Assembly (NCBI RefSeq): GCF_000737315.1
Contig: NZ_JMCB01000005.1
Coordinates: 124,001-188,000 of the forward strand
Direction of reading: 5' to 3'
Length of the DNA stretch: 64,000 nucleotides
From: Hyalangium minutum
Lineage (GTDB): Bacteria > Myxococcota > Myxococcia > Myxococcales > Myxococcaceae
Positions within the stretch are counted from its first letter, which is position 1. Each line of letters begins with the position of its first letter. A program made the translations under genes and the position numbers. This document shows positions 16,555 through 36,436 of this stretch, in pieces. Below the pieces are notes generated by a model, which made no database searches, had not been told where the DNA came from, and saw nothing but the letters and a program-made list of their open reading frames with translations.

Positions 16555-16837
16555 GGTCGGTCCTTTGAGGGAACAGGCAGTCGTTCCGGCATTCCTGCTC
16601 GACCTGCCAGCAGGCTTTGCGGCACAAGGAGAGCCCGCTTCCCGCGTGCTCCTCGCAGATGTCGGCGCACTTCTCTCGAGCGCTCGTGCAATCTTCTTTG
16701 CAGACGGCTTCCGGTTCGCGGCGGACGGGCTTCCCATGCGCCATGCCGCTCGAGAGGAGCCACAGGCCCCCCAGCGCCATGCCGCGCAGCACCGTCCAGG
16801 CCGCGCGCCGCGGCTTTCGGGCAGAGTGATGCATCAT
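16529..16837 (-). CDS. Small secreted Cys-rich protein (twin CX3C-X6-CX3C)
   Basis: ATGA overlap with the upstream stop; signal-like N-terminus; 8 regularly spaced Cys. Confidence 0.6.
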   Translation of the reverse strand: MMHHSARKPRRAAWTVLRGMALGGLWLLSSGMAHGKPVRREPEAVCKEDCTSAREKCADICEEHAGSGLSLCRKACWQVEQECRNDCLFPQRTDHEEQDASP

Positions 16838-18752: not shown

Positions 18753-18775
18753 CGGAGCGTGTCAGGGGCCGCCCG

Positions 18776-20314: not shown

Positions 20315-21066
20315 GTGTTCGACTGGGGAAGCGCAGAGGCGTAGAGGTTGGACTGCATCCGCATGGTGTAGGCGGCCCGGATGGGGAGGATGTAGACGCC
20401 CCGGTTGGCGGCGTCCGCGTACTCCTGGCCGAAGAGGTTCTGTCCGGGGGGCTGCTGCTTGCCCATCCGCATCAGCATGGGCAGCTCGCGCTGCAACGCG
20501 ATGGAGTGGATGACCCAGTTGGCGAAGGGGATGGGGAGCCGGTAGTTGAGCGTCACCTGGATGCGCAGCTTGGTGCGGTGGCTCTGAAGCCACTCGTCGT
20601 AGGGGGAGGAGGCCACGCGCGGATCATCGAAGTCCAGCTCGCGCGTTCCTCCAGGAAGCTCCTGGAGCGTGGGCCCGCAGATGGTGACTGCCACGTAGGG
20701 CAGCTTCGCGTCGGGCATCTGGTTGGTTGAGACACCCTCCGAGTTCCACTTCTTCTGGAAGTTCTTGGCACCGGTGACGGGCTGGATGGACTCGCCGCCG
20801 CCTTGGTCCTGGCTGATCAACGGCAGCAGCACCGCGAGCCCCGCCTGCTCCATGGCGTCCTTGTGCGCGTGGTGCAGCGAGCCCACGCGCACGGCCCGGT
20901 AAGCGGCGTACTTCGCCATCAGCCGCGCCTGATGCATCATGCCGAGCTGAAGGATGCCCAGGATCAGGAAGACGAACAGCGGCAGGATGATGGCGGTCTC
21001 GATGGCCGCCTGTCCCGACTGAGCGTGGCGTGGGGATGGCCGCGGGCCTGGCTCTCCTCGGCTCAA
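20290..21066 (-). CDS. TadE/TadF family minor pilin
   Basis: SG|QAAIETAIILPLFVFLILGILQ...AAYRAVR TadE signature; TTGA overlap with the upstream gene. Confidence 0.85.
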   Translation of the reverse strand: MSRGEPGPRPSPRHAQSGQAAIETAIILPLFVFLILGILQLGMMHQARLMAKYAAYRAVRVGSLHHAHKDAMEQAGLAVLLPLISQDQGGGESIQPVTGAKNFQKKWNSEGVSTNQMPDAKLPYVAVTICGPTLQELPGGTRELDFDDPRVASSPYDEWLQSHRTKLRIQVTLNYRLPIPFANWVIHSIALQRELPMLMRMGKQQPPGQNLFGQEYADAANRGVYILPIRAAYTMRMQSNLYASALPQSNTCLTTNHL

Positions 21067-21752
21067 GGAGCCGCCCCTGGCTCACGGCCGGCGCTCAGGG
21101 GAGGGAGGCTGACGAGCGCCTGGCGATCCTGCGGGGTGAGGCCCGGCCCATCCGTGACGTTGGAGATGGCGTACTGCACCTCCTCTCGCCCCGGCACCGG
21201 TAGGAACTTGTCGGCGACCAGATTGATGATCTCACGCAGCCCGGGATCCTGGGTGACAGGGCCCAGGCGATAGGTGTCCCACGAGGCCGTAGGAGCCCGG
21301 GTCTCGTTGATGCAGTAGAGGTGCAGTGCCACGGCGAGCGTCTGCTGGGCGGGGACCTGCAGCGGGACGGCCTGGGCCAGCATTCCGTTCTGAGAAGAGA
21401 GATCGTCGGAGATCAGGATGAGACCCGCGGGCAGCTCCACGGTCCGGAGCTGCGCGGAGGTGTTGCGCAGCCTCAAGCAGACGCTCACCAGCGAGCCGCT
21501 GCCCTTCTCTTCTTGGGATTCCTGCTCCTCGGGGATGCAGTCGAGGGCATAGCCTTCAATAGGGGAGAGAAGCTCCACGCCGGAAGGCAGCACATACGGC
21601 GTGCCGACTGGGGTGGCCAGCGATGAACCGATGCCAGGCCGTGTGACGTCACCCGGATTGACTCCAGGGCCACCCTCTCCCTCGGTCCCTCCACCGCAGG
21701 CCACCAGAGCCACCAGTCCCAAAAGCCAGCCCATCCGCCTGAAGTCTCGCAA
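21063..21752 (-). CDS. Hypothetical lipoprotein leading the Tad cassette
   Basis: Lipobox LVAC; translationally coupled to TadE; start uncertain (21752 TTG after ggagga, or 21797). Confidence 0.65.
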   Translation of the reverse strand: MRDFRRMGWLLGLVALVACGGGTEGEGGPGVNPGDVTRPGIGSSLATPVGTPYVLPSGVELLSPIEGYALDCIPEEQESQEEKGSGSLVSVCLRLRNTSAQLRTVELPAGLILISDDLSSQNGMLAQAVPLQVPAQQTLAVALHLYCINETRAPTASWDTYRLGPVTQDPGLREIINLVADKFLPVPGREEVQYAISNVTDGPGLTPQDRQALVSLPPLSAGREPGAAP

Positions 21753-21922
21753 CGTTCCTCCACGCAGGTCTTCCGGTGGCACACTCCGTGTGGCCACGCA
21801 TCACCGAACGTGACGCCGCTAAGTAACCCGTGGCGGAAGCGCCTCACAACAGACAGCCAAGAGGCGTGTGGAGGTCCGGCTCCACGGCAGGCGAGCAGGA
21901 TGAAGGAGCCGGATGCGAGGAA

Positions 21923-23815
21923 TTATTTACGATGAGCGCGCCGGAGCTCATCGTTGGCCAACGTGGCACGGACCCGGGGCGCAGCCGCGTGGTCAGGAGC
22001 GAGCTCCAAGAACTTGCGGTAGTGCTCCGAGGCTCTGGCTTGTTGGCCCAGGGCCAAGGCTGCGTCGCCTGCCAGCAATTGGCAATGAGCGTCGTCAGGA
22101 GCTTGCTGGAGGCATTGCTGCGCGCGCGGCAGAGCCTCGTCGAACTGCCGGACCTTGAAGAGCTGCGTCCCCTCCACAAAGGCCCGCCTGGCCTCGAGGC
22201 GTCGAAGCTTCTGCCGGATCTCCAAGGCGCGCGGGTGGGTGGGCGCCAAGCGCAAGAAGCGGGTGTAGCGATCTGCGGCCTTCCGTGACAGCGAATCCGA
22301 CCGTTGTCGGGTGTAAGCCTCACCCGCGATCAGGAAGCACTCGGCCCACTGAGGATCCTGCTGGATGCACTTCTCTCCCTGGAAGGCAGCCAGCTTCACG
22401 TTGTTGCGGAGGAGGGCCTTCTCGGCGCTGGCATATGCGGCCGGGGGCTCGCTGGGGACGGGACGAGGACTCTCGGCAGCGGGGGCGCCCGGAGGGGAAG
22501 CCGAAGGTGCGGCCACGACCATGGAAGCTACCGCGACGGGAATCACGGCGGACGCTCCTCCAGAGGCAGGAGCGCGTGGCTCCTTGCGTGTCAGGCCACT
22601 TTCCCCAGCCACCCGTGGCATTGGCTGAGGCGTGGGGCTCCGTGGAGTGGCCATTGCCAGGGCCAGCGCGGCCCCTGCGACCGCCGAGCCGACTCCTACC
22701 CCCAACAACCTCATTCTGGAGGAGAGGGGACGTACCGGCTCGACCTGTGTGTCCGTGGGGGGCTCTACTGAAGGGGCGCGCTGAGGCGAAGCTGGGAGCT
22801 GGGGAGAGGTTCCTGTCCGCCACCGATCGAGCTGCTCTTGGAAGGAGGGGGGCACCAGCGGCTGCCGGCCCTCCGCCCGCAGGTCTTCCGAGAACAATGC
22901 GTGAATGAAGGAGGAGAGAGACCTCGTGGAGAGGCGGGGATCCATGCTGGCCAAGGCTTCGGTGAGGGCTTCGTCCAGGGCCATGCAGGAGGGGTAACGA
23001 TCTTCGCGCCGGAGGGTCAGCGCCCTCATCACGATGGCATCCAACTCCAGGGGGAGTTCTGGGTTGATCACGCAGGGACGAGGGAACTCGCCACGAACGA
23101 TCCGGGACAGCGCCGAGTAGGCAGGGCCCTCCACGGGAAGCCTCCCGCATAGCAGCTTGTATAGGACGACCCCCGTGGCCCACACATCCGTGCGTGCGTC
23201 CACCAGTTCCCCGCGGGCCTGCTCGGGAGAGAAATAGAGAAACTTGCCCTTCACCGTCCCTGGAGTCGTGGCGAAGTCCCGGGGCTCGCTCGACTGGGCA
23301 ATCCCAAAATCGACGATCTTGACCTGTCCCTCGTAGCTGATGAGCACGTTGTCTGGAGCGATGTCCCGGTGGACGATCTCCAGCGGCTGGCCCTGCTGAT
23401 CCAGGCGGGTATGGGCATAGTGCAAGCCCCGGCACATCTCGCTGCCGATGAGGAGCGCCAGCGGCGCTGGAATGGAGGACAGGCCGGAGCGCAGCGCTCG
23501 CTGAAGCACACGATTCAGGGGCTGGCCATCCACATACTCCATGGCCAAGAAGTACTCGCCGTCGATGCAGCCGAAGTCGTACACCTGAGCGATGTTGCTG
23601 TGCGAGAGCGACGAGGAGATCCGCGCCTCGCGGATGAACATCGTGGTGAAGTCAGGGTTGGAGGCGTGCTCGGGCAGCACCTTCTTGATGAGCACCTCGC
23701 GCGTGACTCCTGCCGCCCCTTGCAGCTGAGAGCGGTAGGTGACTGCCATGCCGCCACGGCCCAGGCATGACACCAGCTTGTAGCGACCGAAAGACTCTCC
23801 AGATTCCACGTCCAT
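21923..23815 (-). CDS. Ser/Thr protein kinase with TM and C-terminal TPRs
   Basis: GRGGMA, HRDIAPDN, DFGIA, YFSPEQ; TM VGVGSAVAGAALALA; two TPR-like blocks (C..LAG.A...Y..FL.LAP). Confidence 0.92.
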   Translation of the reverse strand: MDVESGESFGRYKLVSCLGRGGMAVTYRSQLQGAAGVTREVLIKKVLPEHASNPDFTTMFIREARISSSLSHSNIAQVYDFGCIDGEYFLAMEYVDGQPLNRVLQRALRSGLSSIPAPLALLIGSEMCRGLHYAHTRLDQQGQPLEIVHRDIAPDNVLISYEGQVKIVDFGIAQSSEPRDFATTPGTVKGKFLYFSPEQARGELVDARTDVWATGVVLYKLLCGRLPVEGPAYSALSRIVRGEFPRPCVINPELPLELDAIVMRALTLRREDRYPSCMALDEALTEALASMDPRLSTRSLSSFIHALFSEDLRAEGRQPLVPPSFQEQLDRWRTGTSPQLPASPQRAPSVEPPTDTQVEPVRPLSSRMRLLGVGVGSAVAGAALALAMATPRSPTPQPMPRVAGESGLTRKEPRAPASGGASAVIPVAVASMVVAAPSASPPGAPAAESPRPVPSEPPAAYASAEKALLRNNVKLAAFQGEKCIQQDPQWAECFLIAGEAYTRQRSDSLSRKAADRYTRFLRLAPTHPRALEIRQKLRRLEARRAFVEGTQLFKVRQFDEALPRAQQCLQQAPDDAHCQLLAGDAALALGQQARASEHYRKFLELAPDHAAAPRVRATLANDELRRAHRK

Positions 23816-24058: not shown

Positions 24059-24670
24059 TCATTTCAGCGAAGACAGGATCACGTCGAACTGCGTGCTCGC
24101 GAGCTCGGTGTCGGTCTTCATGTGCTGCAGCATGAGCCCGCGGGTCCTGCCCTTCTCCTTCCACGCGAAGAGCTCGATCTTGAGCTGCTCCCCCGCCAGC
24201 ACGACGTCGAACGCTTTGCCCTGGCGCTCCGCACCGGACACCGTGCGCTTCGGCGCGGGGAGCGCCTTGAGCTGTCCTCCGCGTTCCGTGAACCCCTCGC
24301 CCACCCCACTCGCCAGCGCCTCCAGGACATCCTTGGCCTCCACGGAGGCTGGATACAGCTGGATGATCGCGAGCGGAGACGCGGGGCTTTCGAGCGTGAT
24401 CGTCGTCACGCCCGCCTCGGTGGCCTCGGAGAGCTTCATCTCGCTCGGGTACTGAAAGGCGAGACCCGCCTTGTTGTACGAGATCGCCTTCTTTCTCGAG
24501 ACGATCAATTCCACCGTCTCGCCCTTCGGGGTGGTCACCTTGAGCGGCTGCTCCAGCGACATGGGGTAGGTCTTTCCGCCCACCTTCACCTCGAAGCCCG
24601 CCTCTTCCGCAAGGACGGCGGAGCTACACAGAAGTGCCACTCCGACCACGACCGCTCGACATGCGCGCAT
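24059..24670 (-). CDS. Hypothetical secreted protein
   Basis: Signal peptide ending AVLA-EE; typical codon usage; resembles a PsbP/DcrB-like beta-rich fold (weak). Confidence 0.65.
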   Translation of the reverse strand: MRACRAVVVGVALLCSSAVLAEEAGFEVKVGGKTYPMSLEQPLKVTTPKGETVELIVSRKKAISYNKAGLAFQYPSEMKLSEATEAGVTTITLESPASPLAIIQLYPASVEAKDVLEALASGVGEGFTERGGQLKALPAPKRTVSGAERQGKAFDVVLAGEQLKIELFAWKEKGRTRGLMLQHMKTDTELASTQFDVILSSLK

Positions 24671-24898
24671 GTGTACTCCCCAAGAAGTGAGCGGCGACGC
24701 TATCACCATGACTGTGGGCGTGTGTGGGGTGTCGGGCCTTCGGTCCGGACGGAGCCGTGGGGCTCGCCGGTTCGTTCGACGCCAGCGTCTCGTCACTACG
24801 CGGATGCGTGGTGCGAACACGCAGCGGCGCGCAGGGAGGACGTTCTTCCATGCCGCATGCTCGCCTGTTTCCCTCGGGAACGGCTCGGCACGCCGTAC

Positions 24899-24914
24899 TG
24901 GCATGCGGGTTGCT
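24899..24914 (+). promoter_or_regulatory. sigma54 -24/-12 promoter
   Basis: TGGCATGCGGGTTGCT, a near-perfect TGGCA(C/T)G-N4-TTGC(T/A) match, 82 nt upstream of ATG 24997. Confidence 0.7.
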
Positions 24915-24996
24915 AACCCCTCTGGCAGCAACCCACTGCTCCATTCCTGTGAATGGAGCCCACAAACGAAGTTCACCCCAGAGGAGAGACCTTCCC

Positions 24997-25263
24997 ATGT
25001 CGATGCATCGCGCAGCACTGCGGTTCCTGGCTGTGATTCTGGCGACGTCGGCCGTTGCTTGCGGTGGCGAGGCTGGTGACGTTGAGACGGACGCGACGAA
25101 CGCTTTGACTGTCCACGAGCGCGCGGCCTACACGGTGGAGCAGTATCGGAAGACCACGCAGGTTGAGGCCGCAATGAAGTGCTCCGAGGTTCCGGATCGA
25201 TGCTGCACGGACACGGGCTTCTGCTGCACGTGGGGCCACCCCGACGGGCCGATCTGTCACTGA
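24997..25263 (+). CDS. Small Cys-rich lipoprotein
   Basis: RBS gaggag; lipobox AVAC; C-terminal C-X6-CC-X5-CC-X9-C. Confidence 0.7.
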   Translation: MSMHRAALRFLAVILATSAVACGGEAGDVETDATNALTVHERAAYTVEQYRKTTQVEAAMKCSEVPDRCCTDTGFCCTWGHPDGPICH

Positions 25264-25468
25264 GGCTGTTTCCACCCACCGTCGTACAGCCAGGAGCTGG
25301 GGGAGCTCTGGCAGGCAGGGCTCTCCCGGCTCCATCGGAGCACTGCGGCTGGAAATGCGTGCGAGGTGCACGTATTTTGCTGCGGGCGCGCGACTGCGAG
25401 CACTTCGGCGGGTGTCGGCGTCGGCTCGCCGACGAGTTCACCTCGCCGCTCGAGCACGGAGGACAGCC

Positions 25469-25840
25469 GTGACGATCACGCTGAACCACACCATCGTCCC
25501 CGCGAGGGACAAGAGCGCGTCGGCCACGTTCCTGGCCGAGCTCTTGGGGGTCGAGGTGTCACCCCCCGCCGGGCCCTTCGTGCCGGTGAAGATCAACGAG
25601 GACCTCACCTTCGACTTCGACGATCGCCGCGAGCCCTTACCGGGTCACTACGCATTCCTGGTCGATGACACGACGTTCGACCGGATCCTGAATCATGCCC
25701 AGACCCGGGGGCTCGCCTTCGGCTCGGGGCCCGGAGGTGGCTGGGACGGCCGCATGAACCACCTCAACGGCGGGAGAGGCGTCTACATCCAGGACCCAAA
25801 CGGGCACAGCTACGAGTTCTTCACCGTCGTGCCTTCCTGA
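25469..25840 (+). CDS. VOC/glyoxalase family protein
   Basis: TLNHTIVPARDK.ASA.FLAELLG, HYAFLV, GRGVYIQDPNGH.YE. Confidence 0.9.
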   Translation: MTITLNHTIVPARDKSASATFLAELLGVEVSPPAGPFVPVKINEDLTFDFDDRREPLPGHYAFLVDDTTFDRILNHAQTRGLAFGSGPGGGWDGRMNHLNGGRGVYIQDPNGHSYEFFTVVPS

Positions 25841-25874: not shown

Positions 25875-26621
25875 TCAGCTTCCGCGCAAGAAGGCCCGGG
25901 TCATGGCAGCGTACTGGGCGGAGTCTTGTTGCATGCGCTGGAGCAGGTCCTGAGCCTTTGCTGCCTCAGGGCCTCCCATCAGGACGAGAGAGCGCAGCGC
26001 CTTCACATAACCCAAGCGGTCTCTGCGTTGCTCCGCCAGAGGCTCCCGTCGCAGTCCCAGGATGCGAAGGGTCGTCTCACCGCGAGCGTTGCCGCCTACG
26101 GCATAGGGAACCTCCTCCCGGAACGAGATGGAGGCTTCGGGATCATCCGCCGCAGGATCCAGCAACAGAGGGTCTTCCTCTGTCACGTCATTCTTGTGGC
26201 TCCGAGCTCGTTTCGCGGGAGTTCCCAGTGGGAAGAGGTTTCGTTTGAACTGCTGATTGCAGAGCGTGCAGGACACGAACAGGTTGGCCCACTCATAGGC
26301 GAGCCAGTAGTACCCGGGGCGATGAAGGGGCTCTCCTTCCTCCTGGCGCCACCCAGCCTTGGGGCGGAAGTGTTCGACGTCCCCGAAGTCGATGTGGGTG
26401 AAGCGCGATTCGCAGAAGGCGCATTTGCCGTGCTGGGCCTGGATGAGCGCCTGCTTGACGGTCTCGTGGCCGTAGAGGTCCGAGTCGGATTCGAACGACC
26501 TCGTTCCCCTCTCGTAGCTCCGAGCAGCGCGCGAGTAGGCCGTGCTGAAGGCTCGCCGGGCCTGGACCCCTTGGGTGCGAAGAATCTGAGGTGGCTCGGC
26601 AGGTTTCCGGACGCGAATCAC
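25875..26621 (-). CDS. HNH endonuclease (PtuB / TIGR02646-like)
   Basis: QHGKCAFCES..DVEHFRPK..YYWLAYEWANLFVSCTLCNQQFK; GTGA overlap with the ATPase stop. Confidence 0.88.
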   Translation of the reverse strand: MIRVRKPAEPPQILRTQGVQARRAFSTAYSRAARSYERGTRSFESDSDLYGHETVKQALIQAQHGKCAFCESRFTHIDFGDVEHFRPKAGWRQEEGEPLHRPGYYWLAYEWANLFVSCTLCNQQFKRNLFPLGTPAKRARSHKNDVTEEDPLLLDPAADDPEASISFREEVPYAVGGNARGETTLRILGLRREPLAEQRRDRLGYVKALRSLVLMGGPEAAKAQDLLQRMQQDSAQYAAMTRAFLRGS

Positions 26622-27982
26622 TTGGGCCCGTTCCTGAGACGCGCGGCGGCACGTTGGATGAGCTCAAGTGCCTCGCGCTCGGTGTGAGTCTCGCCCGTGG
26701 GCAGCGGACCGATGGCCGCCTCCAGCTCGAGCAGCCGGGCCTCATCCTCTCGGGTCAGGCGGGGCTTGGAGAGGAGGGCTGTTCGCTCCTTGAGGAACTC
26801 CTCGATTTGGGGCGGACGCGCCGTCTCGAGCCCGAACAGATCGCTCGTAAGGATCTGGTCCACCCGCCAGCCGCGAATGGACTCCACATCGTTATCGATG
26901 ACGACGTGATCTCCCTTGCGCCGCAGGACAACGATGTTCGCGTTCGTGGCACTCTGGACGACGAGCGGGCTGTGCGCGGTGACGATGAACTGCGTCTGGG
27001 GAAAGCGATCCGTGAGGTACCCAATAAGCTGGCGCTGCCACTTCGGGTGCAGGTGGAGATCGATCTCGTCAACGAGCACCACCGCGGGCTCAGCCAGGGG
27101 ATTGGGGCTGTTGGGGTAGCGCTCGAACATGCGGCTGGCGAGGTCCACCATCCAGGCGATGAGGGTCCGATACCCCAAGCTCAAGTCCCGCATGGCGACC
27201 CAGCCGTAGGGTGTTAGCACCTCCACCCGTGCGGCAGGGACTTTCGCCGTGGGAACTGCGAAGCGGACGTCACTCACCTCCGGGAGCAAGTCGATCAACA
27301 GTTGCCTGATCCGGTCCCGCTTCGTTGTAGCTGCTTGCTGGTCGGGAGAAGGCTTGCTGGCGGCATAGTCCGCTTGCAGGAGCCATTCTTCCGCGTTTCT
27401 CAGGGGCACATCTTCGAGGAAGAGGCTGTCACTCGGTTGTGTCTCTTTGAGCGCAGACAGAGATCCCGCCCCCATCCGGCGGGTGGCTCCGTACCCGTAA
27501 CACACCAGATTGAGGAACGGCTCAGAGATAGTTTGTGACGTGGAGCCGAGAACCTCTGGGGTCAAGGAATACTCAAGTCGCTGCTGATGCTTGGGAGAGC
27601 CTTCTTCAGGCACCCAATTTCCGGCGGAGAGCTCGGCGGAAAAGTGTGCGGCTTTGGCTTGATGGCGTACGGGAACCCAAGGCAAGCGACCGTAATGGAC
27701 AAATCCCTTGGTGGCGTAGTGAGGGCCCGACGAAGCTGGTTCAAAGGTCGTCAAGCTCTGCAAGAGCGTCGTCTTGCCCATGCCGTTGTTGCCGAGGATC
27801 ACCGTCCAGCGTGCTGGTTCTCCTCGCTCATTTGAGAGCTTCAGGGTCTGGCTGGGCCCGAAGCACCGGACGTCCTTGAGTGTCAATGAAAGGAAGTACA
27901 CGGGCAGGGCGGCAGGTTTCGGAGCCTTTGTGCCACGCCCCTGTTTGCCCTGGCGTGATTTTCCCTGACCTCTGGCGGCCAT
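26618..27982 (-). CDS. ABC/SMC-type ATPase (PtuA-like, Septu-type)
   Basis: Walker A GNNGMGKT, signature LSLGY, Walker B VVLVDEIDLHLHP, H-loop TAHSP. Confidence 0.88.
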   Translation of the reverse strand: MAARGQGKSRQGKQGRGTKAPKPAALPVYFLSLTLKDVRCFGPSQTLKLSNERGEPARWTVILGNNGMGKTTLLQSLTTFEPASSGPHYATKGFVHYGRLPWVPVRHQAKAAHFSAELSAGNWVPEEGSPKHQQRLEYSLTPEVLGSTSQTISEPFLNLVCYGYGATRRMGAGSLSALKETQPSDSLFLEDVPLRNAEEWLLQADYAASKPSPDQQAATTKRDRIRQLLIDLLPEVSDVRFAVPTAKVPAARVEVLTPYGWVAMRDLSLGYRTLIAWMVDLASRMFERYPNSPNPLAEPAVVLVDEIDLHLHPKWQRQLIGYLTDRFPQTQFIVTAHSPLVVQSATNANIVVLRRKGDHVVIDNDVESIRGWRVDQILTSDLFGLETARPPQIEEFLKERTALLSKPRLTREDEARLLELEAAIGPLPTGETHTEREALELIQRAAARLRNGPK

Positions 27983-28319
27983 GTCGCTCCCCTGCGGCGT
28001 TTCCCATCCCGATGCTGAACTTGGGCGGTGTATCACGGATCCCTCCCTCCGGCCTGACCCGCCAGGCCTGCGCGCTGCTCACTCATGGGGTTCTGCCTCG
28101 CTGAAGTGAGTGGGACTTCGGTGGGGCGATAAGCAGCATCCAGGCCACCGCCAGAACTCCGTGACTTCGCGTGGTTACGTGGGAGTGTCAGGCCCTCGAT
28201 CGTCTCATCCGGCGGACGGTGGAGTCCGCAGCTGTGGACGGCGGGAGCGCCGCGTGTGGCTCCGCGAATTGCCAGCACTGGATTGGCAAGAGGCCTCCGC
28301 CTGGACGATCGTTGCCGTC

Positions 28320-30560
28320 ATGACTCCGAAGCCGCCCGGGTTCCTCGTCCGCCACATCCAGCAGAAGCGGTGCGTGGTCTTCGTCGGCGCGGGCCTCTCG
28401 GCGGGAGCGGGGCTGCCGACCTGGAAGGAGCTGCTTCTCCGGGGCATCCAGGAACTGGTGGGGTCTCTCCCCAAAGGCGAAGTCCACCAGCAAGAACTCT
28501 CTGACCTCGTCAAGTGGGGCAAGCTGCTGGAGGTGGCCGACTTCTGCAAGGAGAAGCTTGGCAGTGCCTACCACCAGTTCCTCAGCGAGCAGGTGCGCGG
28601 AGATCAGGTTCAGAAGCTTCCCCCCACCCATGATGTGCTGATGCGCCTGCCCTTCAGTGCGTGGGTGACGACCAACTACGACAAGCTCCTGGAGCGGGCC
28701 TACTCGCAGGTGAAGGGCGGCGGCTCCCCGAAGACGCTCACCCACAAGGACACGGAGGCGCTCGGGCGGCTGCTCTTCGACGGCGGCCCGTTCATCCTCA
28801 AGGCCCACGGGGACATCGACCGGCCCGAGACGGTGGTGCTCACCTCTCGCGACTACAGCGAGATCATCCACGCCAACCCCGCCTTCAACGAGATCTTCAG
28901 CGGACTGCTGCTCACCAAGGCGCTGCTATTCGTGGGCTACTCGCTGTCGGATCCGGACTTCCGGCTGCTGATGGACCGCCAGCTCACGCACTTCAAGGGC
29001 TTCGTCCCCGAGCGCTACGCCCTGATGACCGGGGTGGGGGAGGTGGAGCAGGACGTGCTCTGGCGCACGGCGCGCATCCGGGTCATCTCCTACGACAACG
29101 CCAGCGGGAAGCACGCGGAGGTGCTCGACTTCCTGAAGGCGCTGGAGGCCGAGGTGCTCCCGAAGCCGGCCCTGGAGCCGTTCATGGTCCCTTCGGAGTC
29201 CGCGCCGCCGCAGAGCGGCTCCTCACCCGTCCTGGAGTCCATGCCGTCCCGGCAGAGCAGCCCCGCCCCCACTCCGGCGGCGCAGTCCTGGCACGTCACT
29301 TCTCATAACGTCGCGGCGGGCTCGGGGCCGGGCAGTTCAGTGCTGGGATCCCGGGTCGCGGAGCTGTTCCTGCAGGGTGACGAAGAACCCGAAGTCAGCT
29401 CATCGGCCCCTCCCCCTCGCGGTCCTGTTCCCCAGCCCGCAGCCCACGTGCCTGCGGCAGCCCCCGCTCCCGTGGTGGTTCCTCTCACTCCCCACCGGCT
29501 CCACATCGAGCCCGTGGAGGGAAGGATCCAGCTCCGGCTGATCCGAGGAGACACAGCGCCGGTGGTGCAGGGGACCGTGCCCACCCGCCGGGGCGACGAG
29601 GCGTGGCTCTCTCTCAAGGAGGATGAGGGCGATGAAGCCACCGCTGCTCACTCCCTCGCGCTCACCCAGGGCCTGCTCCAGCGAGACATGCCGCGAGAGG
29701 TGCTCGCGGCGCTGGAGGCACAGGACGCCTCCGCCCAGGCGCCGCTCGTGCTGCACATCGATCCGGTGCTGGACCGGTTTCCCTGGGAACTGCTTCCGGC
29801 GGGATCAGAGCCCGTCAGCCTGATGCGGAGGGTGAGCCGCGCGCCCATGGGCATCCCGGCCCAGGTCCGTGGCACTCCCGCAGTCCGGTCCTCGCCGCGC
29901 ATCCTGCTCATCGAGGGGATGAGCCGTGATGGGAGCCTCCGGAGGCGCGAGCTCGAGCGCCTTCACGCGCTCTATGCGGCCGGCCCTTTCTCCTGCACGG
30001 TTCTCCAGGGCAGCGAGGCGACGTTCCGCCATGCCATGGAAGCGCTGAGAGCCGAGCAGACGGACGAACTGCCGGACCTCGTCCACTACACCGGGGAGCT
30101 CATCCTTCCCGGCTCTGGACCCTGCTTGCTGCTGCGGGATGGGCCCCTGCCGGTGGGGGCCCTGCGCTCCGTGCTCAGCCAGGGCCGACTGCCCTTCCTG
30201 GTGATGAATACCCCCTCCTCGGCGTACGAATACCTTCCGTTCCTGAAGCAAGGGCGGCGGGCGCTGCGGCTGCCCTTGCCCGGGCCAGACGCCTTCGATC
30301 AGCGCGAAGGCTTCATGGAGCTGGCCGTTCAGCAAGGCGTGGGAGCCTTCGTGGGGGCCTTCTCCTGGCCCGACGTGAGCGTGGGCGCGGACTTCATGGT
30401 CCAACTGCACCGGGCGCTCTTGATGGGGCAGCCCATCGGCGACGCCGTCCTTCAGGCCCGCAGAGAGGTCCACGCCAAGCTCCCGGATGATCCCACTCCG
30501 CTCCTGTACGTGCTCAGTGGCGACGGCGCTCTCCAGCTCGTCCGCTCTCAGCGCAAGTGA
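28320..30560 (+). CDS. SIR2-like (SIR2_2) NADase domain fused to a degenerate CHAT/caspase-fold domain
   Basis: FVGAGLS, TTNYD, KAHGD, LLFVGYSLSDPDF; Pro/Ser-rich linker; LDRFPWELL, DLVHYTGE, LVMNTP, G..IGDAVLQAR, YVLSGD (CHAT-like). Confidence 0.82.
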   Translation: MTPKPPGFLVRHIQQKRCVVFVGAGLSAGAGLPTWKELLLRGIQELVGSLPKGEVHQQELSDLVKWGKLLEVADFCKEKLGSAYHQFLSEQVRGDQVQKLPPTHDVLMRLPFSAWVTTNYDKLLERAYSQVKGGGSPKTLTHKDTEALGRLLFDGGPFILKAHGDIDRPETVVLTSRDYSEIIHANPAFNEIFSGLLLTKALLFVGYSLSDPDFRLLMDRQLTHFKGFVPERYALMTGVGEVEQDVLWRTARIRVISYDNASGKHAEVLDFLKALEAEVLPKPALEPFMVPSESAPPQSGSSPVLESMPSRQSSPAPTPAAQSWHVTSHNVAAGSGPGSSVLGSRVAELFLQGDEEPEVSSSAPPPRGPVPQPAAHVPAAAPAPVVVPLTPHRLHIEPVEGRIQLRLIRGDTAPVVQGTVPTRRGDEAWLSLKEDEGDEATAAHSLALTQGLLQRDMPREVLAALEAQDASAQAPLVLHIDPVLDRFPWELLPAGSEPVSLMRRVSRAPMGIPAQVRGTPAVRSSPRILLIEGMSRDGSLRRRELERLHALYAAGPFSCTVLQGSEATFRHAMEALRAEQTDELPDLVHYTGELILPGSGPCLLLRDGPLPVGALRSVLSQGRLPFLVMNTPSSAYEYLPFLKQGRRALRLPLPGPDAFDQREGFMELAVQQGVGAFVGAFSWPDVSVGADFMVQLHRALLMGQPIGDAVLQARREVHAKLPDDPTPLLYVLSGDGALQLVRSQRK

Positions 30561-30672
30561 AGGCCGGTTGACGCGGTGCAAAATCCAACCCCACGGGCCG
30601 CCGTGAAAATCGCCCTCTCAGGACCTGAGAACCCCACGAGAAGCCCGAGGCTCGTGTAATCTCCGCCCACCG

Positions 30673-32382
30673 ATGTGGCAGATCATCATCAACGGGCCGG
30701 GCTACTTCGACACCCCTTACGATCTCCCCGAAGGAGCGACCAGCCTCGGCCGAGCCGATGAGAACGACATCGTTCTCGGCGGAGACCTTGTGTCGCGCAA
30801 GCACGCCTGCCTGCTCGTGCAGGGCGACACGCTGCGCATCGAGGACCTCGGCAGTCGCAACGGCAGCCGCATCAATGGCCTCCCCCTCCAGGGCGGCAAA
30901 GACTTAACCCCCGGCGACATCGTCACCCTGGGAGAGAACACCCTCTCCGTTCGCCAGCCCCACACCGTGGAGAGCGCCGCCACGGAGATGGTGGACCTGG
31001 GCGCTGGAGGCGTCCGCCGCTTCGGCCACGGGGAAGACGTCTCCCCAGCGGTGATTCTCGCCAAGAATGTGAAGGATCTGGACGTTCTGCGCGCGCTCGA
31101 CAACTTCGAGCCTGTTCCCTACGAGAATGAATCGGGAGGCAGTACGCCCATTGGTGCCGGTGGCAGCAGCCCTCGCGTCTCCTACGAGAAGCTCGTGCTG
31201 CTGTTCCGCACCGCCGAGTCCCTGGCCACCGCCGAGTCCCTGCCCGCCTTCCTCGAGTCCGCCATGGACCGAGTGCTGGAGCGCACCGAGGCCACCACCG
31301 CCGTGGTGCTGCTGCGCCACTCCAGCGGGGTCCTGGTGCCCGCCTCCGTGCGCCACCGGGGCAAGCTGGCCAAGGGCGAGGTGCCCGTCTCGGACGCCAT
31401 CGTCGAGGAGGCCATGCGCCAGGGCCGCGCGCTCGCCGTGGGAGACGTGCGAGACGACCGGCGCTTCGCGGGCCGCGAGAGCGTCATCCTCTACGGCGTG
31501 GACCGGGTGCTCTGCATCCCCATTGGCCGCGAGCCTCCCTTCGCCGGCGTGCTCTACGTCAACACCCCCGCCGAGTCGGAGACCACGCTGGAGCTCATGC
31601 TGGACGCCTGCACCGCCGTGGCCCACCTGGTGGCCAGCGGCGTGCAGCGCTTCTCCGCCCAGAGCCCCAAGGAGACGGGTGGCCCCGGCAGTGCCCTGCG
31701 CCGCACCCTGGAGCGCTTCCACCCGCCCGAGGTGGCCGAGCGCCGCGCCGCCGAGGCTCAGCGCACGGGAGGCCGCCCCCCCGCCCTGGAGGAGCGGCCC
31801 CTCACCATCCTCCACGCGGAGATGGCAGGCTTTGGCGCGCTGTGCACCCGGCTGGGCCCCGTGCGCGCCTCGGCCGTCCTCAATGACTTCCACGCGAAGA
31901 TGAGCGGCCTCATCTTCAGCTTCGAGGGCTCGGTGGAGGCCTTCGTGGGCGAGTCCGTGCGCGCCCTGTTCGGCTTCCCCTCGGCCAAGCAGGATGACTC
32001 CGTGAGGGCGGTGCGCGCCGGGCTGGCGCTGCGCGCCGACTGGCTGCGGGCCATGTCCCGCCGGCCCGCGGACGAGCGCTGCGAGCTGCGCATCGCGATC
32101 CATACCACCAAAGGTCTGGTGGGGATGATCGGCCCGGACTCGCGGCTGGACCTCGGCGCCGTGGGCGAGGGTGTCCCCGTGGCGGGCTGGCTCGCCTCCA
32201 CGGCTGCTCCCGGACAGGTCCTCATTACCGGAAAGACCCTGGCTTCCATCGGAGCGCGCTTCGACGTGCTGCCTCTGGGAGAGCGTCTGGTGCGGCCTCC
32301 CAAGGACAAGGTGGCGGCCTTCGAGGTGCTCGAGGAGGACGTGCCGGCGCTCACCAATCCGGGCGTCCACGGGCCCAAGTAA
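30673..32382 (+). CDS. FHA + GAF + class III nucleotidyl cyclase-like protein (degenerate cyclase)
   Basis: LGRADEND..VSRKHA..DLGSRNG (FHA); LCIPI..GVLYV (GAF); cyclase fold with substituted catalytic motifs. Confidence 0.85.
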   Translation: MWQIIINGPGYFDTPYDLPEGATSLGRADENDIVLGGDLVSRKHACLLVQGDTLRIEDLGSRNGSRINGLPLQGGKDLTPGDIVTLGENTLSVRQPHTVESAATEMVDLGAGGVRRFGHGEDVSPAVILAKNVKDLDVLRALDNFEPVPYENESGGSTPIGAGGSSPRVSYEKLVLLFRTAESLATAESLPAFLESAMDRVLERTEATTAVVLLRHSSGVLVPASVRHRGKLAKGEVPVSDAIVEEAMRQGRALAVGDVRDDRRFAGRESVILYGVDRVLCIPIGREPPFAGVLYVNTPAESETTLELMLDACTAVAHLVASGVQRFSAQSPKETGGPGSALRRTLERFHPPEVAERRAAEAQRTGGRPPALEERPLTILHAEMAGFGALCTRLGPVRASAVLNDFHAKMSGLIFSFEGSVEAFVGESVRALFGFPSAKQDDSVRAVRAGLALRADWLRAMSRRPADERCELRIAIHTTKGLVGMIGPDSRLDLGAVGEGVPVAGWLASTAAPGQVLITGKTLASIGARFDVLPLGERLVRPPKDKVAAFEVLEEDVPALTNPGVHGPK

Positions 32383-32483
32383 ACCCCTGCGTCTGGCCGT
32401 CCACAGGCCTTTCGGCCGGTTGACCGGTTGAAGAAGTCCCCCCGAACCGGCTTGAATGGAGAGATCGTGGGTCCTCGCACCGC

Positions 32484-35400
32484 ATGAACACCTCCTCCTC
32501 AGCCCGCCTGAGGCCGTTCCGGCCACAGGCGTTTGGCCGGTATACGCTCCTGTCCCATCTGGCCACCGGCGGCATGGGGGAGATCTACCTGGCGCGGCTG
32601 GAGGGAGCGCAGGGCTTCGAGAAGCTGTGCGTCATCAAGAAGATCCTGCCGCAGCTGGCCGAGGACAAGGAGTTCGTCGACCGCTTCGTGGGTGAGGCCC
32701 GCACGCTGGTGAAGCTCAGCCACGGCTCCATCGCCCAAGTGTTGGACATGGGCCTGCACGAGGGCGAGGCGTATATGGCCCTCGAGTACGTGGACGGCAA
32801 GGACCTGCGCAAGGTGGCTGGCCGCGTGCGGGACAGGCACACGCCGCTGCCGCTCACCTTCATTCTCTTCGTCATGGGGCGGGTGCTGGACGCGCTGGCG
32901 TACGCGCACCGCAAGCGGGACGACGACGAGAAGGACATCAACCTCGTCCACCGGGACATCTCGCCACAGAACATCCTCATCTCCTACGAGGGGGAGGTGA
33001 AGGTGGTCGACTTCGGGCTGGCCAAGAGCCGGCTGTCGGCGGCGAAGACCAACCCGAGCATCATCCTGGGCAAGTTCCTCTATATGTCGCCGGAGCAGGC
33101 CCGGCACCAGCCGGTGGACCGCCGCAGTGACTTGTATGCGGTGGGACTTTGTCTCTACGAGCTGATCTCCGGGAAGAACCCGTTCGACGCGGTGCACTCG
33201 GGCGACCTCATGTCCGTGGTGGCGCACCCGCGCATCGCTCCGCTGGGCGAGGTGGAGCCGCTCACGCCGTCCGCCGTGGCCAACCTGGTGATGAAGGCGC
33301 TGGCGGTGGAGCCGGCGCAGCGCTTCCAGACGGCCGAGGAGTTCCGCGCCAAGCTGATGGGCGTGCTGATGGACATCGACCGGAACGCCGGTCCAGAGAC
33401 CGTCAGCCGCTTCATGCGAGAGCTGTTCGCCCAGGAGTTCGCGGGCGAGCGCAAGCTGCTGGCCCAGCTGAAGGAAGTGCCGCGCGGGGGCGAGCCGCTC
33501 GTGCCGCGCATGGGCACCGAGCTGGACACGGATCCGGCCGCCCGGTTCCCTCCGCCCAGCCTGCCGCCGAAGACCATCAAGCTGGATCCGCCGCCCGAGC
33601 CGCTCTCCTTCCAGCCCACGCCGCGCTCCCGCCCGGGCGCCCAGGCGCATGTGCACGAGGAGGAGACCCGGCCCGGTGTGGTGGTCAACAGCGAGACCAC
33701 CCGTCCCGCCGTCTCCTTCGAGGCGCTCGACGCGGCCGCCCGGGCCCGCGTCCGGTCGCCGCTGTCCTCCCTGCCGCCCGCGCCCGACACCGTCACGGTG
33801 GAGCTGGGCTCGGAGGACTTTGGCCCCTTCCCAGGGGAGCCGGTCTCCGTGGCCTCTCCCGCGCCCGCGCGCTTGAGCGCTCCCACGGTGGAGATGCCGG
33901 TGCCCTACATGCCTGCGGCGGCCATTCCGCCCAGCGCACCGTCTTCGCCGCAGATGTCCGGCACCGCGCGGACCCTGGAGGCGCCTCGGGCCGTCCCGCC
34001 TCCGCCTCTGCCTGCTCCCAGCGCGTCTGGGAACCGGCCTCCCGATCCGCCGCTGCGCGCGGCCATGCCAGGTGCCCTCCCGCCGGGATCCGTCCCCACC
34101 AAGCCGGGAGAGATGCCTTCACCGCGCACGCCGCCCGCGCCGCCATCATCCTCCGCCGCCGCGAGGCTGCAGGAGACGCAGCGGGTGACGCTGCCTCCGC
34201 CGCCCTCGAGCGCGGTCACCCCCGAGCCGCGAAGGCAGGAGGCGAGCCGCGCCGAGAGCTCGCCGGCGTCCGCAACGGCCTCCCCGGCGGTGATGCTTCC
34301 CTTCACCACGCCGTCCACGCCGATGCCCGCGGTGTCAGCGGAGAGCCCGCCGCCCGTGCCGGAGGTGTCGCTGCCCGCCGAGCCCCAGGCCGAGATCGTC
34401 ACGGCCCCGCGGGAGCTGCCCCGGTCCATGTCCGCCCGCGCGGCGCAGGCGGACCCTGGGAGTGGAGGGACGGACGCCAGCCGCCGTGGCCTGGACGACA
34501 CGCACCCCAGCTACCAGATGGCTTCCTCGCCGCCTCCAGCGGATACGCAGCCGCGCGTGGTGCTGGATGAGCTGGCGCTCCAGAACGGCCCGGAAGAGGG
34601 CATCGTCCCGGGCATTCCGGAGGAGCCCCTCTCCAATCCCGGGCGCGACCGCTCCGAGGACTCCATCTCGGTTCCGGGCCGCCCGAGGACCGGACGGCGC
34701 CCGCGCAGCACAGGTGGGACGCCGGCGAGCTTGCCGGCCATGCGCGGAGGCACGGCGTCCGTGCGCGCCGCTCAGCGCCCCGTGGAGCCGGTGAGCGCCC
34801 CTCCAGAGCGAGCGGAGACGGATGACTCCGCTCCGGTGGCCATCGCCGTCGACGACCCCACCCCAGCAGAGGCCCGCGACCCGCGCGACGATACGCGGCG
34901 GACGCCCCTGCCCACCCGGCCGCCCACCGAGAGCCGCCGCGCGCAGCGTGAGGAGGCACGGCGGCCCGCGGCGCCGCCTGCTCCGGCCCAGAAGCGCTCC
35001 TGGGGGTGGATGGTCCTGAGCCTCGTGCTGCTGCTGGGCGCGGCCGCGGCGGTGTACGCGACGCTCCCGATGATCCAGGCGCTGGTGAAGTCGAAGCTGG
35101 AGGACGCGAAGCCTGCCGAGCCGGGGACGACGCGCATCCAGCCGACGCCGGTTCCGAGCGGGCCGCCGGGCCAGACTCCGGCCGCTGCGCCCCCGACACC
35201 CGAGCCCGCGGCGGCCACGCCTCCCGCGAGCCCCGCACCCACAGAAGCGGCAGCCCCGCCTCCCGCGGGGGCCGTTGCCGCCGTCACGCCAGAGGTTCCC
35301 GTGCCGGAGAGCGCGAGCCCGGATGAAGGCGAGGACGATGATTTGCTGCCCCTGCCTGCCACGCCGTCGCCTCCGCCCAAGAAGAGCCAGAGCTCGCGTT

Positions 35401-35657
35401 CCAGCAAGAAGGCCTCTGCGGCCTTGCGCAAGGAAGTGCAGGAGCTCAAGAACGACTGGACGGCGACGAAGGCCGCCTACGCGAAGCTCACCCAGGAAGT
35501 GTCGTGTGAGGCCACCACGCTGGGCCTCCTCTGCAGCAGGTACGACAACCTGCGGCGGGACTATGCAGCCTTGGGCGAGAACTCCTACGACAAGGAAATC
35601 CACAGCCGGGTGAAGAGGATGCGCACCGAGCTCAACAAGGCGCTGAGCGCCCAGTAG
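32484..35657 (+). CDS. Ser/Thr protein kinase with long Pro-rich linker, TM and extracytoplasmic helical domain
   Basis: ATGGMGEIY, VIKK, HRDISPQN, DFGLA, YMSPEQ; TM WGWMVLSLVLLLGAAAAVY. Confidence 0.92.
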   Translation: MNTSSSARLRPFRPQAFGRYTLLSHLATGGMGEIYLARLEGAQGFEKLCVIKKILPQLAEDKEFVDRFVGEARTLVKLSHGSIAQVLDMGLHEGEAYMALEYVDGKDLRKVAGRVRDRHTPLPLTFILFVMGRVLDALAYAHRKRDDDEKDINLVHRDISPQNILISYEGEVKVVDFGLAKSRLSAAKTNPSIILGKFLYMSPEQARHQPVDRRSDLYAVGLCLYELISGKNPFDAVHSGDLMSVVAHPRIAPLGEVEPLTPSAVANLVMKALAVEPAQRFQTAEEFRAKLMGVLMDIDRNAGPETVSRFMRELFAQEFAGERKLLAQLKEVPRGGEPLVPRMGTELDTDPAARFPPPSLPPKTIKLDPPPEPLSFQPTPRSRPGAQAHVHEEETRPGVVVNSETTRPAVSFEALDAAARARVRSPLSSLPPAPDTVTVELGSEDFGPFPGEPVSVASPAPARLSAPTVEMPVPYMPAAAIPPSAPSSPQMSGTARTLEAPRAVPPPPLPAPSASGNRPPDPPLRAAMPGALPPGSVPTKPGEMPSPRTPPAPPSSSAAARLQETQRVTLPPPPSSAVTPEPRRQEASRAESSPASATASPAVMLPFTTPSTPMPAVSAESPPPVPEVSLPAEPQAEIVTAPRELPRSMSARAAQADPGSGGTDASRRGLDDTHPSYQMASSPPPADTQPRVVLDELALQNGPEEGIVPGIPEEPLSNPGRDRSEDSISVPGRPRTGRRPRSTGGTPASLPAMRGGTASVRAAQRPVEPVSAPPERAETDDSAPVAIAVDDPTPAEARDPRDDTRRTPLPTRPPTESRRAQREEARRPAAPPAPAQKRSWGWMVLSLVLLLGAAAAVYATLPMIQALVKSKLEDAKPAEPGTTRIQPTPVPSGPPGQTPAAAPPTPEPAAATPPASPAPTEAAAPPPAGAVAAVTPEVPVPESASPDEGEDDDLLPLPATPSPPPKKSQSSRSSKKASAALRKEVQELKNDWTATKAAYAKLTQEVSCEATTLGLLCSRYDNLRRDYAALGENSYDKEIHSRVKRMRTELNKALSAQ

Positions 35658-35659
35658 CC

Positions 35660-36436
35660 GTGACGCTGCTCCTCGAGACCCAGGGCCTCGTCGCCGGCTA
35701 TGGCCCATCGCCTGTGCTGCAGGGCGTGGACTGCTCGGTGCGTGCAGGGGAGCTGTGGGCGGTGCTGGGGCCGAACGGCACGGGCAAGAGCACGTTGCTG
35801 CGCGCGGTGCTGGGCGCGCTGCCGTGGATGCGGGGCACGGTGCGGCTGCTGGGGCAGGAGCGCTCGGCATGGGAGCCGCGCGAGCTGGCCCGGCGTGTGG
35901 CCTGGGTGCCGCAGCTCTTCGAGCCCGCCGAGGGCTTCAGTGGGTTGGAGCTGGTGCTGATGGGGCGCAGCCCGCACCTCGGGCTGTGGGGCCTCACCTC
36001 CGAGCGGGACGCGGCGCTGGCACGCACGGTGCTCGAGGAGCTGGGCGTGGCGCACCTGGCGGACCGGCCGGGCGAGGCCATGTCCGGCGGCGAGCGCCGC
36101 ATGCTGCTGCTGGCGCGGGGGTTGGTGCAGGAGCCCTCGCTGCTGCTGCTGGACGAGCCCACGGCCTTTCTGGACGTGGCGCACCAGGTGAGCTCGCTGG
36201 CACGGGTGCGGGCGCGGGTGGAGGCGGGGCTGGGAGCGGTGGCGGTGCTGCACGACGTGAACATGGCGGCGGCCTTCGCCACCCATGTGCTGCTGATGCG
36301 AGATGGCCGCGTGTTGGCACAGGGGCCGGTGGACACGGTGCTGGAGCGCGAGCGGCTCGAGGCGCTCTACGGCCTGCCCATGGAGATGGCGCTGGCTCCC
36401 TCGGGAGCCCGGCTCTTCGCGCCACGGGCGGGCTGA
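35660..36436 (+). CDS. ABC transporter ATP-binding protein (iron-siderophore/cobalamin type)
   Basis: GPNGTGKST, VAWVPQ, MSGGE, LLLLDEPT, AVLHD. Confidence 0.92.
   Translation: MTLLLETQGLVAGYGPSPVLQGVDCSVRAGELWAVLGPNGTGKSTLLRAVLGALPWMRGTVRLLGQERSAWEPRELARRVAWVPQLFEPAEGFSGLELVLMGRSPHLGLWGLTSERDAALARTVLEELGVAHLADRPGEAMSGGERRMLLLARGLVQEPSLLLLDEPTAFLDVAHQVSSLARVRARVEAGLGAVAVLHDVNMAAAFATHVLLMRDGRVLAQGPVDTVLERERLEALYGLPMEMALAPSGARLFAPRAG

Follow-up and report, generated by a model that had tools for sequence, protein, structure and literature searches.

The 64,000-nucleotide stretch of Hyalangium minutum DNA analyzed here (the window; contig NZ_JMCB01000005.1, positions 124,001 to 188,000) encodes a protein, called SIR2-CHAT below, in which a SIR2 NADase-type domain is joined to a CHAT-fold domain that has no catalytic dyad. 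The protein consists of three parts: an SIR2_2 domain, a disordered tether rich in proline, serine, and alanine, and a CHAT fold. It is well supported that the CHAT-fold domain is unable to act as a cysteine protease and yet is functionally retained. With about even confidence, we read the whole as a single-chain effector that consumes nicotinamide adenine dinucleotide (NAD+) under the control of a non-proteolytic CHAT-fold module for sensing or oligomerization, with a likely role in immunity.

The gene probably starts at the ATG at 28320, since this is the codon at which the homologue consensus MxPKPPxxLVRYL opens. Its GC content at third codon positions (GC3) is 0.84, as is usual for coding sequence in the H. 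minutum genome. The window has a GC content of about 68%, and the codon-position GC of the SIR2-CHAT gene fits that of real genes there.

The SIR2 domain is, judging from its sequence, of the ThsA/DSR2/KomC defense type, with an intact predicted active site. The core motifs listed in the initial annotation are all kept: GAGLS at residues 23-27, TTNYD at 117-121, HG at 163-164, and GYSLSDPDF at 206-214. Pfam SIR2_2 (PF13289) scores 99.2 bits (E=2.8e-28), with the cut-off at 24.5. The best PADLOC model for the domain is ThsA (E=3.6e-34), followed by the LmuA and Dsr models; the ThsA models cover residues 10-240 only. PDB sequence matches are to SeThsA (7uxt, 2.6e-24), other ThsA proteins, KomC, and DSR2. 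Residues 1-285 of the full-length AlphaFold2 model have a predicted local distance difference test score (pLDDT) of about 90, and Foldseek places KomC, ThsA, and DSR2 on top (1e-13 to 1e-11). No classical sirtuin is found among the PDB sequence or structure matches of the domain, and no such features were seen in it. It is well supported that the domain looks like an active NADase, and it would then be expected to hydrolyze NAD+.

The C-terminal domain has the CHAT fold that had been proposed for it. Pfam CHAT (PF12770) gives 22.6 bits on the window protein (E=8.4e-5), which is under the 24-bit threshold, so the assignment needed independent support. Distant members of the family do clear the threshold, for example with 55-80 bits. 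An AlphaFold2 model of residues 401-746 alone has a pLDDT of 87 and a predicted template modeling score (pTM) of 0.90. Its best Foldseek matches are Csx29/TPR-CHAT (E=3e-10, query TM-score (TMq) 0.63), separase, and SAVED-CHAT, and further matches include the Myxococcus xanthus anti-sigma factor DdvA, gingipain, and caspases. The fold is thus confirmed by the model, by Foldseek, and by the hhalign comparison described below.

Both residues of the catalytic dyad have been lost from the window protein, as initially claimed, and two alignments show this. When the C-terminal profile of the family is compared with PDB sequences, HFAGHa lies opposite HFIGHG of SAVED-CHAT and YYAGHGY of MALT1, the His of which we take to be the catalytic H415. 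In the second alignment, hhalign against a canonical CHAT protein from Bradyrhizobium (L001:4725-7919, itself matching Pfam CHAT at 3.9e-32) has a probability of 99.3% and pairs HFAGHAWFD with HYAGHAFFD and LFLNSHxT with VFFNACES. By these alignments, the window protein has Glu (E593) where the catalytic His would be and Pro (P632) in place of the catalytic Cys. The degenerate motifs read as first described, VHYTGE at residues 588-593 (30081-30098) and VMNTPS at residues 628-633 (30201-30218). The low-confidence loop at residues 640-660 occupies the position of the caspase intersubunit linker.

Homologues from other organisms suggest that the dyad was lost in steps. The architecture is not the one-off that it first seemed: 297 homologues were returned, nearly all of them SIR2_2+CHAT proteins of 650-790 amino acids (aa), so there are about 300 across several phyla. 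They come from Myxococcota, Acidobacteriota, Gemmatimonadota, Proteobacteria (among them Bradyrhizobium and Accumulibacter), Tectomicrobia, and others, and in some sources they already carry the label 'SIR2-like domain/CHAT domain'. Cys was found at the catalytic position in none of 120 homologues examined. The claim of dyad loss therefore stands for both residues in the window protein and for the Cys throughout the family, but the His is kept in the ancestral form. The main states at positions 593 and 632 are His/His (69 proteins) and x/Pro (42 proteins, all close relatives of the query). Position 593 is His in 71 of the 79 distant homologues; position 632 is His in 70 of these 79 and Pro in all 42 proteins of the myxobacterial clade, and is never Cys. 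Within the x/Pro clade position 593 may be E, D, G, K, Q, F, or S, and in one case it is H. In the His/His proteins a larger set of residues is strongly conserved, comprising D586, H589, G592, H593, W595, D597, and E600 and then N630, S631, H632, T634, F636, and P637 (HFAGHAW...LNSH).

These patterns indicate that the ancestral state of the family is a conserved His/His pair and that the window clade is a derivative that has lost both, as far as can be read from sequences. In a neighbor-joining tree the x/Pro group is monophyletic, and its nearest outgroups include P0043, which is His/His. Since P0043 is encoded at the same syntenic chromosomal locus (L015), the window state arose in place from a His/His ancestor. 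Small sister groups of the window clade (P0044-P0048, P0042, and P0049) have the states R/A, P/G, and H/S, and these independent degenerate states suggest that His/His was lost repeatedly in this branch of the family. Position 632 became fixed as Pro and position 593 then drifted, so the ancestral histidines probably acted as a pair.

The family is rare and uncharacterized. When 1.84 billion representatives were searched exhaustively with HMMER, the C-terminal domain had 229 relatives. Top-scoring matches are His/His or degenerate, and canonical His/Cys CHAT proteins appear only at E>1e-10. The search was also examined for His/His CHAT modules joined to other effectors, but the shorter matches of 400-460 aa are N-terminally truncated SIR2-CHAT fragments. 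For this reason it appears that this CHAT subtype is seen only in fusion with SIR2.

The dyad-less domain is maintained by purifying selection. Ratios of nonsynonymous to synonymous substitution rates (dN/dS) were calculated by the Nei-Gojobori method for the window gene against its relatives at loci L035 (93% aa identity) and L036 (78%). They are 0.056 and 0.10, respectively, for the SIR2 domain, 0.18 and 0.29 for the CHAT-fold domain, and 0.25 and 0.49 for the tether, while the neighboring FHA-GAF-cyclase gene has 0.13 in the comparison with L036 only. The CHAT-fold domain evolves two to three times faster than the SIR2 domain and also faster than the FHA-GAF-cyclase gene, and its dN/dS of 0.18-0.29 is the sign of purifying selection. 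Amino acid identity within the clade is 77-97% for SIR2, 45-93% for CHAT, and 27-89% for the tether.

It is very unlikely that the C-terminal domain is a hydrolase with alternative residues or a functionless, decaying relic. A relic is at odds with the dN/dS values and with an open reading frame (ORF) that is intact in 42 orthologues. For an alternative hydrolase, C559 would be the residue to consider, as 40 of 42 close and 45 of 79 distant homologues share it, and the strongly conserved His/His pocket of the distant clade points the same way. However, C559 lies in the model on an internal beta-strand (residues 558-562), away from the dyad loops, and the window clade varies freely at the His position and has Pro at the Cys position. 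The favored reading is instead that the CHAT-fold domain has been kept as a regulatory module, which may be a sensor or may mediate oligomerization.

The way in which such a module might control the SIR2 domain depends on the tether. The Pro/Ser/Ala linker noticed initially between the domains is present, about 100 aa long and with pLDDT below 50; residues ~286-385/400 contain 20% Pro, 16% Ser, and 12% Ala. Its median length is 103 aa in the myxobacterial clade versus 43 aa elsewhere, and its P/S/A/G/T content is about 61% in both, so this kind of linker is family-wide. The full-length AlphaFold2 model has a pTM of 0.59. Because of this value and the disorder of the linker, no fixed packing between the domains is expected, and the domain-domain contacts in the model allow no arrangement to be claimed. 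In the model the domains resemble two beads joined by a flexible tether.

A flexible tether rules out rigid allosteric coupling, and activation by induced proximity is favored because ThsA and KomC, the closest SIR2 relatives, form helical filaments in solved structures. The best SIR2 matches include filament structures of ThsA (8bto/8btp) and helical ones of KomC, and a preprint describes filament formation as a conserved ThsA activation mechanism (10.64898/2026.03.01.708072). In the proposed mechanism a trigger would bind or rearrange the CHAT-fold domains, which would then associate as caspase-fold domains do. Through this association the SIR2 domains at the other end of the tethers would be assembled into an active oligomer, as related SIR2 NADases require, and would then deplete NAD+. 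The ancestral His/His pocket probably binds a ligand. Since the myxobacterial lineage has lost this pocket, the trigger of the window protein has probably changed. A bolder proposal is possible, though we hold it only tentatively: SIR2-CHAT proteins may be undescribed single-gene immune sensors that deplete NAD+, in which a CHAT protease was turned into a receptor. The His/His pocket (H589, H593, W595, D597, E600, N630, H632, and T634) would then bind a small-molecule or peptide signal, and the myxobacterial lineage would have been re-tooled for another trigger. In this connection, the His/His type has a TIR-like/Macro-like gene beside it in Accumulibacter.

Among known systems, SIR2-CHAT would work most like ThsA or the DSR-type effectors, that is, as an SIR2 domain plus a sensor. 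In both sequence and structure (8bto, 7uxt, 6lhx), the closest SIR2 domain is that of the type I Thoeris effector ThsA (SIR2-SLOG), with the same catalytic Asn and His, and ThsA shares the layout of an N-terminal SIR2 and a C-terminal regulatory domain. In SIR2-CHAT, however, the C-terminal domain is a CHAT fold rather than SLOG (or Macro), and the domains are held on a disordered tether of about 100 aa, whereas those of ThsA are packed together. In addition, no TIR (ThsB) gene lies near SIR2-CHAT in the window, where the neighbors are PtuA/PtuB, an FHA-GAF-cyclase, and a kinase. DSR1, DSR2, and KomC have the same SIR2_2 NADase fold and active site, and the DSR proteins likewise hold an effector and a large sensor region in one polypeptide. 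The NCBIfam models for DSR1 and DSR2 nevertheless score no more than 43.7 and 26 bits where the cut-off is 1400, over the SIR2 region only, and the sensor of DSR2 is a helical C-terminal domain unrelated to the caspase fold of SIR2-CHAT. Unlike Avs5 and other SIR2-STAND proteins, SIR2-CHAT has no Pfam NTPase domain (Avs5 E=0.055).

The C-terminal domain resembles the CHAT proteases in its fold, N-terminal subdomain, and PWE motif. These proteases (Csx29/TPR-CHAT of Craspase, SAVED-CHAT, separase, and DdvA) also work within immune or regulatory machines. They keep the His-Cys dyad, whereas the SIR2-CHAT family has no Cys and the window protein has neither residue. The dyad of DdvA, for example, is H862/C907 (PMC11506125). 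The initial annotation held that this architecture is not a named system. In agreement with this, the protein falls outside Thoeris, DSR1/DSR2, Avs5, and the active CHAT proteases. No description of the architecture was found in the searchable literature, and a systematic preprint on TIR systems does not mention it. Type IV Thoeris was considered as a ligand-binding analogue with a caspase fold and was set aside, as its paper places ligand binding in a separate C-terminal domain.

SIR2 NADases recur as immune effectors, and each new sensor domain found with them has revealed a new way in which infection is detected. Selection on a caspase-fold domain that has no nucleophile would make it a bacterial counterpart of the eukaryotic pseudo-caspases. 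Pseudo-caspases such as cFLIP serve as regulatory scaffolds, and cFLIP forms heterodimers with caspase-8. The comparison is an analogy only: in both cases the catalytic residues are lost and the caspase fold is retained, presumably for binding or dimerization. Beyond the fold there is no homology, and the SIR2-CHAT domain is fused to an NADase and has no identified partner protease. If the analogy is right, the CHAT fold could have a receptor or scaffold function in place of a proteolytic one, and if the receptor reading holds, this would be the first pseudo-caspase sensor of a bacterial NADase. The natural series from canonical His/Cys through His/His to x/Pro makes the question experimentally tractable.

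The gene neighborhood in myxobacteria is conserved on one side of SIR2-CHAT and variable on the other. Downstream, a block of genes for an FHA-GAF-cyclase, a kinase of about 1050 aa, an ABC ATPase, and further proteins follows on the same strand in at least 11 loci of several genera. On the upstream side, the 5' end of SIR2-CHAT is exactly where synteny stops. In the window this side is occupied by a complete Septu system, divergent from SIR2-CHAT, in which PtuA and PtuB overlap by 4 nt. Its GC3 is below that of the surrounding genes, which suggests acquisition. The 78% identical relative at L036 has Septu in the same arrangement, but at L035 (93% identical) the same slot, which separates SIR2-CHAT from a glyoxalase-like gene, is filled by an unrelated pair of overlapping genes (L035:1783-3322 (-), 286 and 230 aa) without a Pfam or PADLOC match. 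This pair is a candidate for an uncharacterized defense cassette in a hotspot with exchangeable content. At other myxobacterial loci the upstream genes are TonB/Fec or che genes, and the Fec/TonB cluster is absent from the window. At L032 a divergent paralogue of the FHA-GAF-cyclase lies upstream of SIR2-CHAT.

It is highly improbable that SIR2-CHAT is a third component of the adjoining Septu, with PtuA-PtuB as sensor and SIR2 as effector. The direct adjacency in the window and at L036 would fit such an arrangement. However, only 2 of the roughly 28 loci examined have Septu beside SIR2-CHAT, SIR2-CHAT stays at L035 where Septu is replaced, and PtuAB is complete by itself. Septu is therefore treated as a separate, complete system, and SIR2-CHAT is mostly found without it.

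A scan of metagenomes anchored on the FHA-GAF-cyclase gene shows that SIR2-CHAT is not a fixed part of the locus. It is present where the anchor is at least 85% identical (L037-L040) and absent at L041, L042, L045, and L047, where the anchor is 54-74% identical. Upstream of the anchor at L041, L042, and L045, the place of SIR2-CHAT is taken by another conserved pair of unknown proteins, which also occurs at L046. The pair measures about 563 aa plus about 230-250 aa at L041 and L045; its members are 39-75% identical and have no Pfam match. Presence in close relatives and absence in distant ones indicate that SIR2-CHAT is an accessory gene that borders a conserved block.

The conserved block raises the question of a non-immune function. 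SIR2-CHAT might be a regulatory SIR2 enzyme (an NAD+-dependent ADP-ribosyltransferase, deacylase, or NADase) of a conserved myxobacterial signaling locus, working with the FHA-GAF-cyclase and the kinase, for example through phosphorylation of the Ser/Thr/Pro-rich tether and its binding by FHA. The shared gene order, the short intergenic gaps (113 and 102 nt), the very strong conservation of the SIR2 domain, and the housekeeping genes around most of the distant homologues are all consistent with this. We nevertheless consider this main rival fairly unlikely. SIR2-CHAT is only 43-65% identical among the syntenic loci while the block is 72-93% identical, so that it evolves much faster than its supposed partners. 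The block occurs without SIR2-CHAT at L041, L042, L045, and L047, and SIR2-CHAT occurs without the block at L005 (Stigmatella), at L018, and at all non-myxobacterial loci; the independent occurrence of each weakens the signaling explanation. Moreover, the close relatives of this SIR2 subtype that have been characterized are all anti-phage NADases, and no classical sirtuin features were seen in the domain. If SIR2-CHAT were a housekeeping signaling enzyme after all, it would give the first non-immune role for a ThsA-type SIR2.

Outside the myxobacteria the neighbors differ from lineage to lineage. Conserved partner genes were sought across lineages and none was found, as the neighbors in Bradyrhizobium and Accumulibacter are each specific to their lineage. 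In Bradyrhizobium sp. 21 the canonical CHAT protein used above as comparator (1065 aa, + strand) is encoded 79 nt upstream of SIR2-CHAT. It combines an alpha/beta-hydrolase (lipase-like) domain, a Peptidase_M17_N-like domain, and a canonical His/Cys CHAT domain, and similar proteins of about 1000 aa are the nearest canonical relatives of the His/His CHAT subtype.

This gene pair bears on the idea of a protease-gated or decoy effector, in which an active caspase-like or viral protease pairs with the dead CHAT domain or cleaves the tether and so frees or activates SIR2, much as in cFLIP/caspase-8 heterodimers or in protease-activated effectors. Besides the Bradyrhizobium pair, the disordered tether and the loop at the intersubunit-linker position would offer potential cleavage sites. 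Pairing with a CHAT protein is limited to one lineage, however; no gene for a CHAT protein, caspase, or other protease adjoins in the window or the myxobacterial loci, and the hypervariable tether has no conserved cleavage motif. Protease gating is accordingly improbable. Of the mechanisms suggested at the outset, neither decoy action toward a phage protein nor release through cleavage of the linker found direct support.

Accumulibacter has a different arrangement. A 452-aa gene (L003:6627-7985, +) lies 16 nt upstream of a His/His-type SIR2-CHAT, and the same is true at L024 and L026-L029. It has weak matches to a PADLOC TIR effector (3.5e-7), Pfam CAP12-PCTIR_TIR (1e-3), and a Macro-like domain (2.6e-3), and together with SIR2-CHAT it may form a Thoeris-like pairing. 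A NUDIX gene stands just before this TIR-like/Macro-like gene. In a gammaproteobacterial metagenome-assembled genome (L021), SIR2-CHAT stands between genes for a reverse transcriptase (PADLOC RT 4.6e-51, DRT-like) and a subtilase (9.8e-49). No other non-myxobacterial locus was seen with clearly defense-like neighbors.

The role of SIR2-CHAT would most likely be in abortive infection or conflict immunity, at a variable slot shared with Septu. An immune role is favored because of the SIR2 subtype, the faster evolution of the CHAT domain, the pattern of presence and absence, and the swappable Septu slot. Several observations weigh against it. Most homologues outside the immediate relatives of the window have housekeeping or signaling neighbors, such as dnaB/alr, metE-like plus serine dehydratase, transglutaminase-like, SDR plus cytochrome c, and M28 peptidase genes, or the TonB/Fec and che genes of myxobacteria. 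In the small sample of loci, neighbors of known defense type are limited to the window and L036 (Septu) and L021. The SIR2 domain is unusually conserved for a defense gene, with 55-63% identity across phyla, and SIR2-CHAT is positionally conserved across myxobacterial genera in a manner resembling vertical inheritance. SIR2-CHAT was not found in IMG/VR, where matches cover the SIR2 domain alone at 22-31% identity, or among PLSDB plasmids, and neither PADLOC nor NCBIfam has a whole-protein family model for it. The immune sensor-effector first proposed is thus plausible, with Septu adjoining in the window and at L036, but the setting of most other homologues speaks against it by a criterion of the initial annotation itself.

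Table 1. Coordinates of the SIR2-CHAT gene, its parts, and neighboring or related genes. Positions are those of the window unless a locus is named.
Feature	Position	Strand	Evidence
ORF containing the SIR2-linker-pseudoCHAT gene	28110-30560	+	ORF listing
SIR2-linker-pseudoCHAT gene, 746 aa plus stop	28320..30560	+	ORF, homologue start consensus, GC3
SIR2_2 NADase domain, residues 1-285	28320..29174	+	Pfam, PADLOC, PDB, Foldseek
GAGLS Rossmann/NAD-binding motif, residues 23-27	28386..28400	+	G23, G25, and S27 invariant in 65 sequences
Predicted catalytic Asn, N119, within TTNYD	28674..28676	+	Invariant in all full-length homologues
Predicted catalytic His, H163, within KAHGD	28806..28808	+	Invariant in all full-length homologues
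Disordered Pro/Ser/Ala-rich tether, residues 286-385	29175..29474	+	pLDDT <50, composition
CHAT-fold (caspase-like) domain without catalytic dyad, residues 390-746	29487..30557	+	AlphaFold2, Foldseek, hhalign, dN/dS
E593 at catalytic His position	30096..30098	+	Aligned to SAVED-CHAT HFIGHG, MALT1 YYAGHGY, canonical HYAGHA
P632 at catalytic Cys position	30213..30215	+	Aligned to Cys of canonical FFNACES
Low-confidence loop after the 'Cys' strand, residues 640-660	30237..30299	+	pLDDT <50 in both models; variable, gapped alignment
Septu system	25875..28036	-
PtuB	25875-26621	-	PADLOC E=5e-102
PtuA	26618-28036	-	PADLOC E=1e-164
Downstream syntenic block	30673..36436
FHA-GAF-adenylate/guanylate cyclase gene	30673-32382	+	Pfam
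Ser/Thr kinase, 1057 aa	32484-35657	+	Pfam
ABC ATPase, 258 aa	35660-36436	+	Pfam
Genes flanking SIR2-CHAT at L021	7251-8327 and 10880-12520
Replacement pair	L041:1109-3558; L045:3470-5838; L046:1612-3603; L042:1197-2891

Some further features of the window lie around the SIR2-CHAT locus. A promoter and terminator scan of 27900-30800 gave nothing informative. The region 16834-23815 (-) contains Tad/Flp pilus-like genes (TadE and TadG-like) together with a gene for a TPR-repeat Ser/Thr kinase of 630 aa, and its genes are not syntenic with any related locus. PADLOC PD-T4-6 matches to the kinases look like generic kinase-domain matches. A 476-aa ORF at 24059-25489 (-) is an over-extension. Its conserved part is a 203-aa gene at 24062-24670 (-), which is 94% identical at L035 and 77% identical at L036, and the spurious part is overlapped by the glyoxalase-like gene at 25355-25840 (+).

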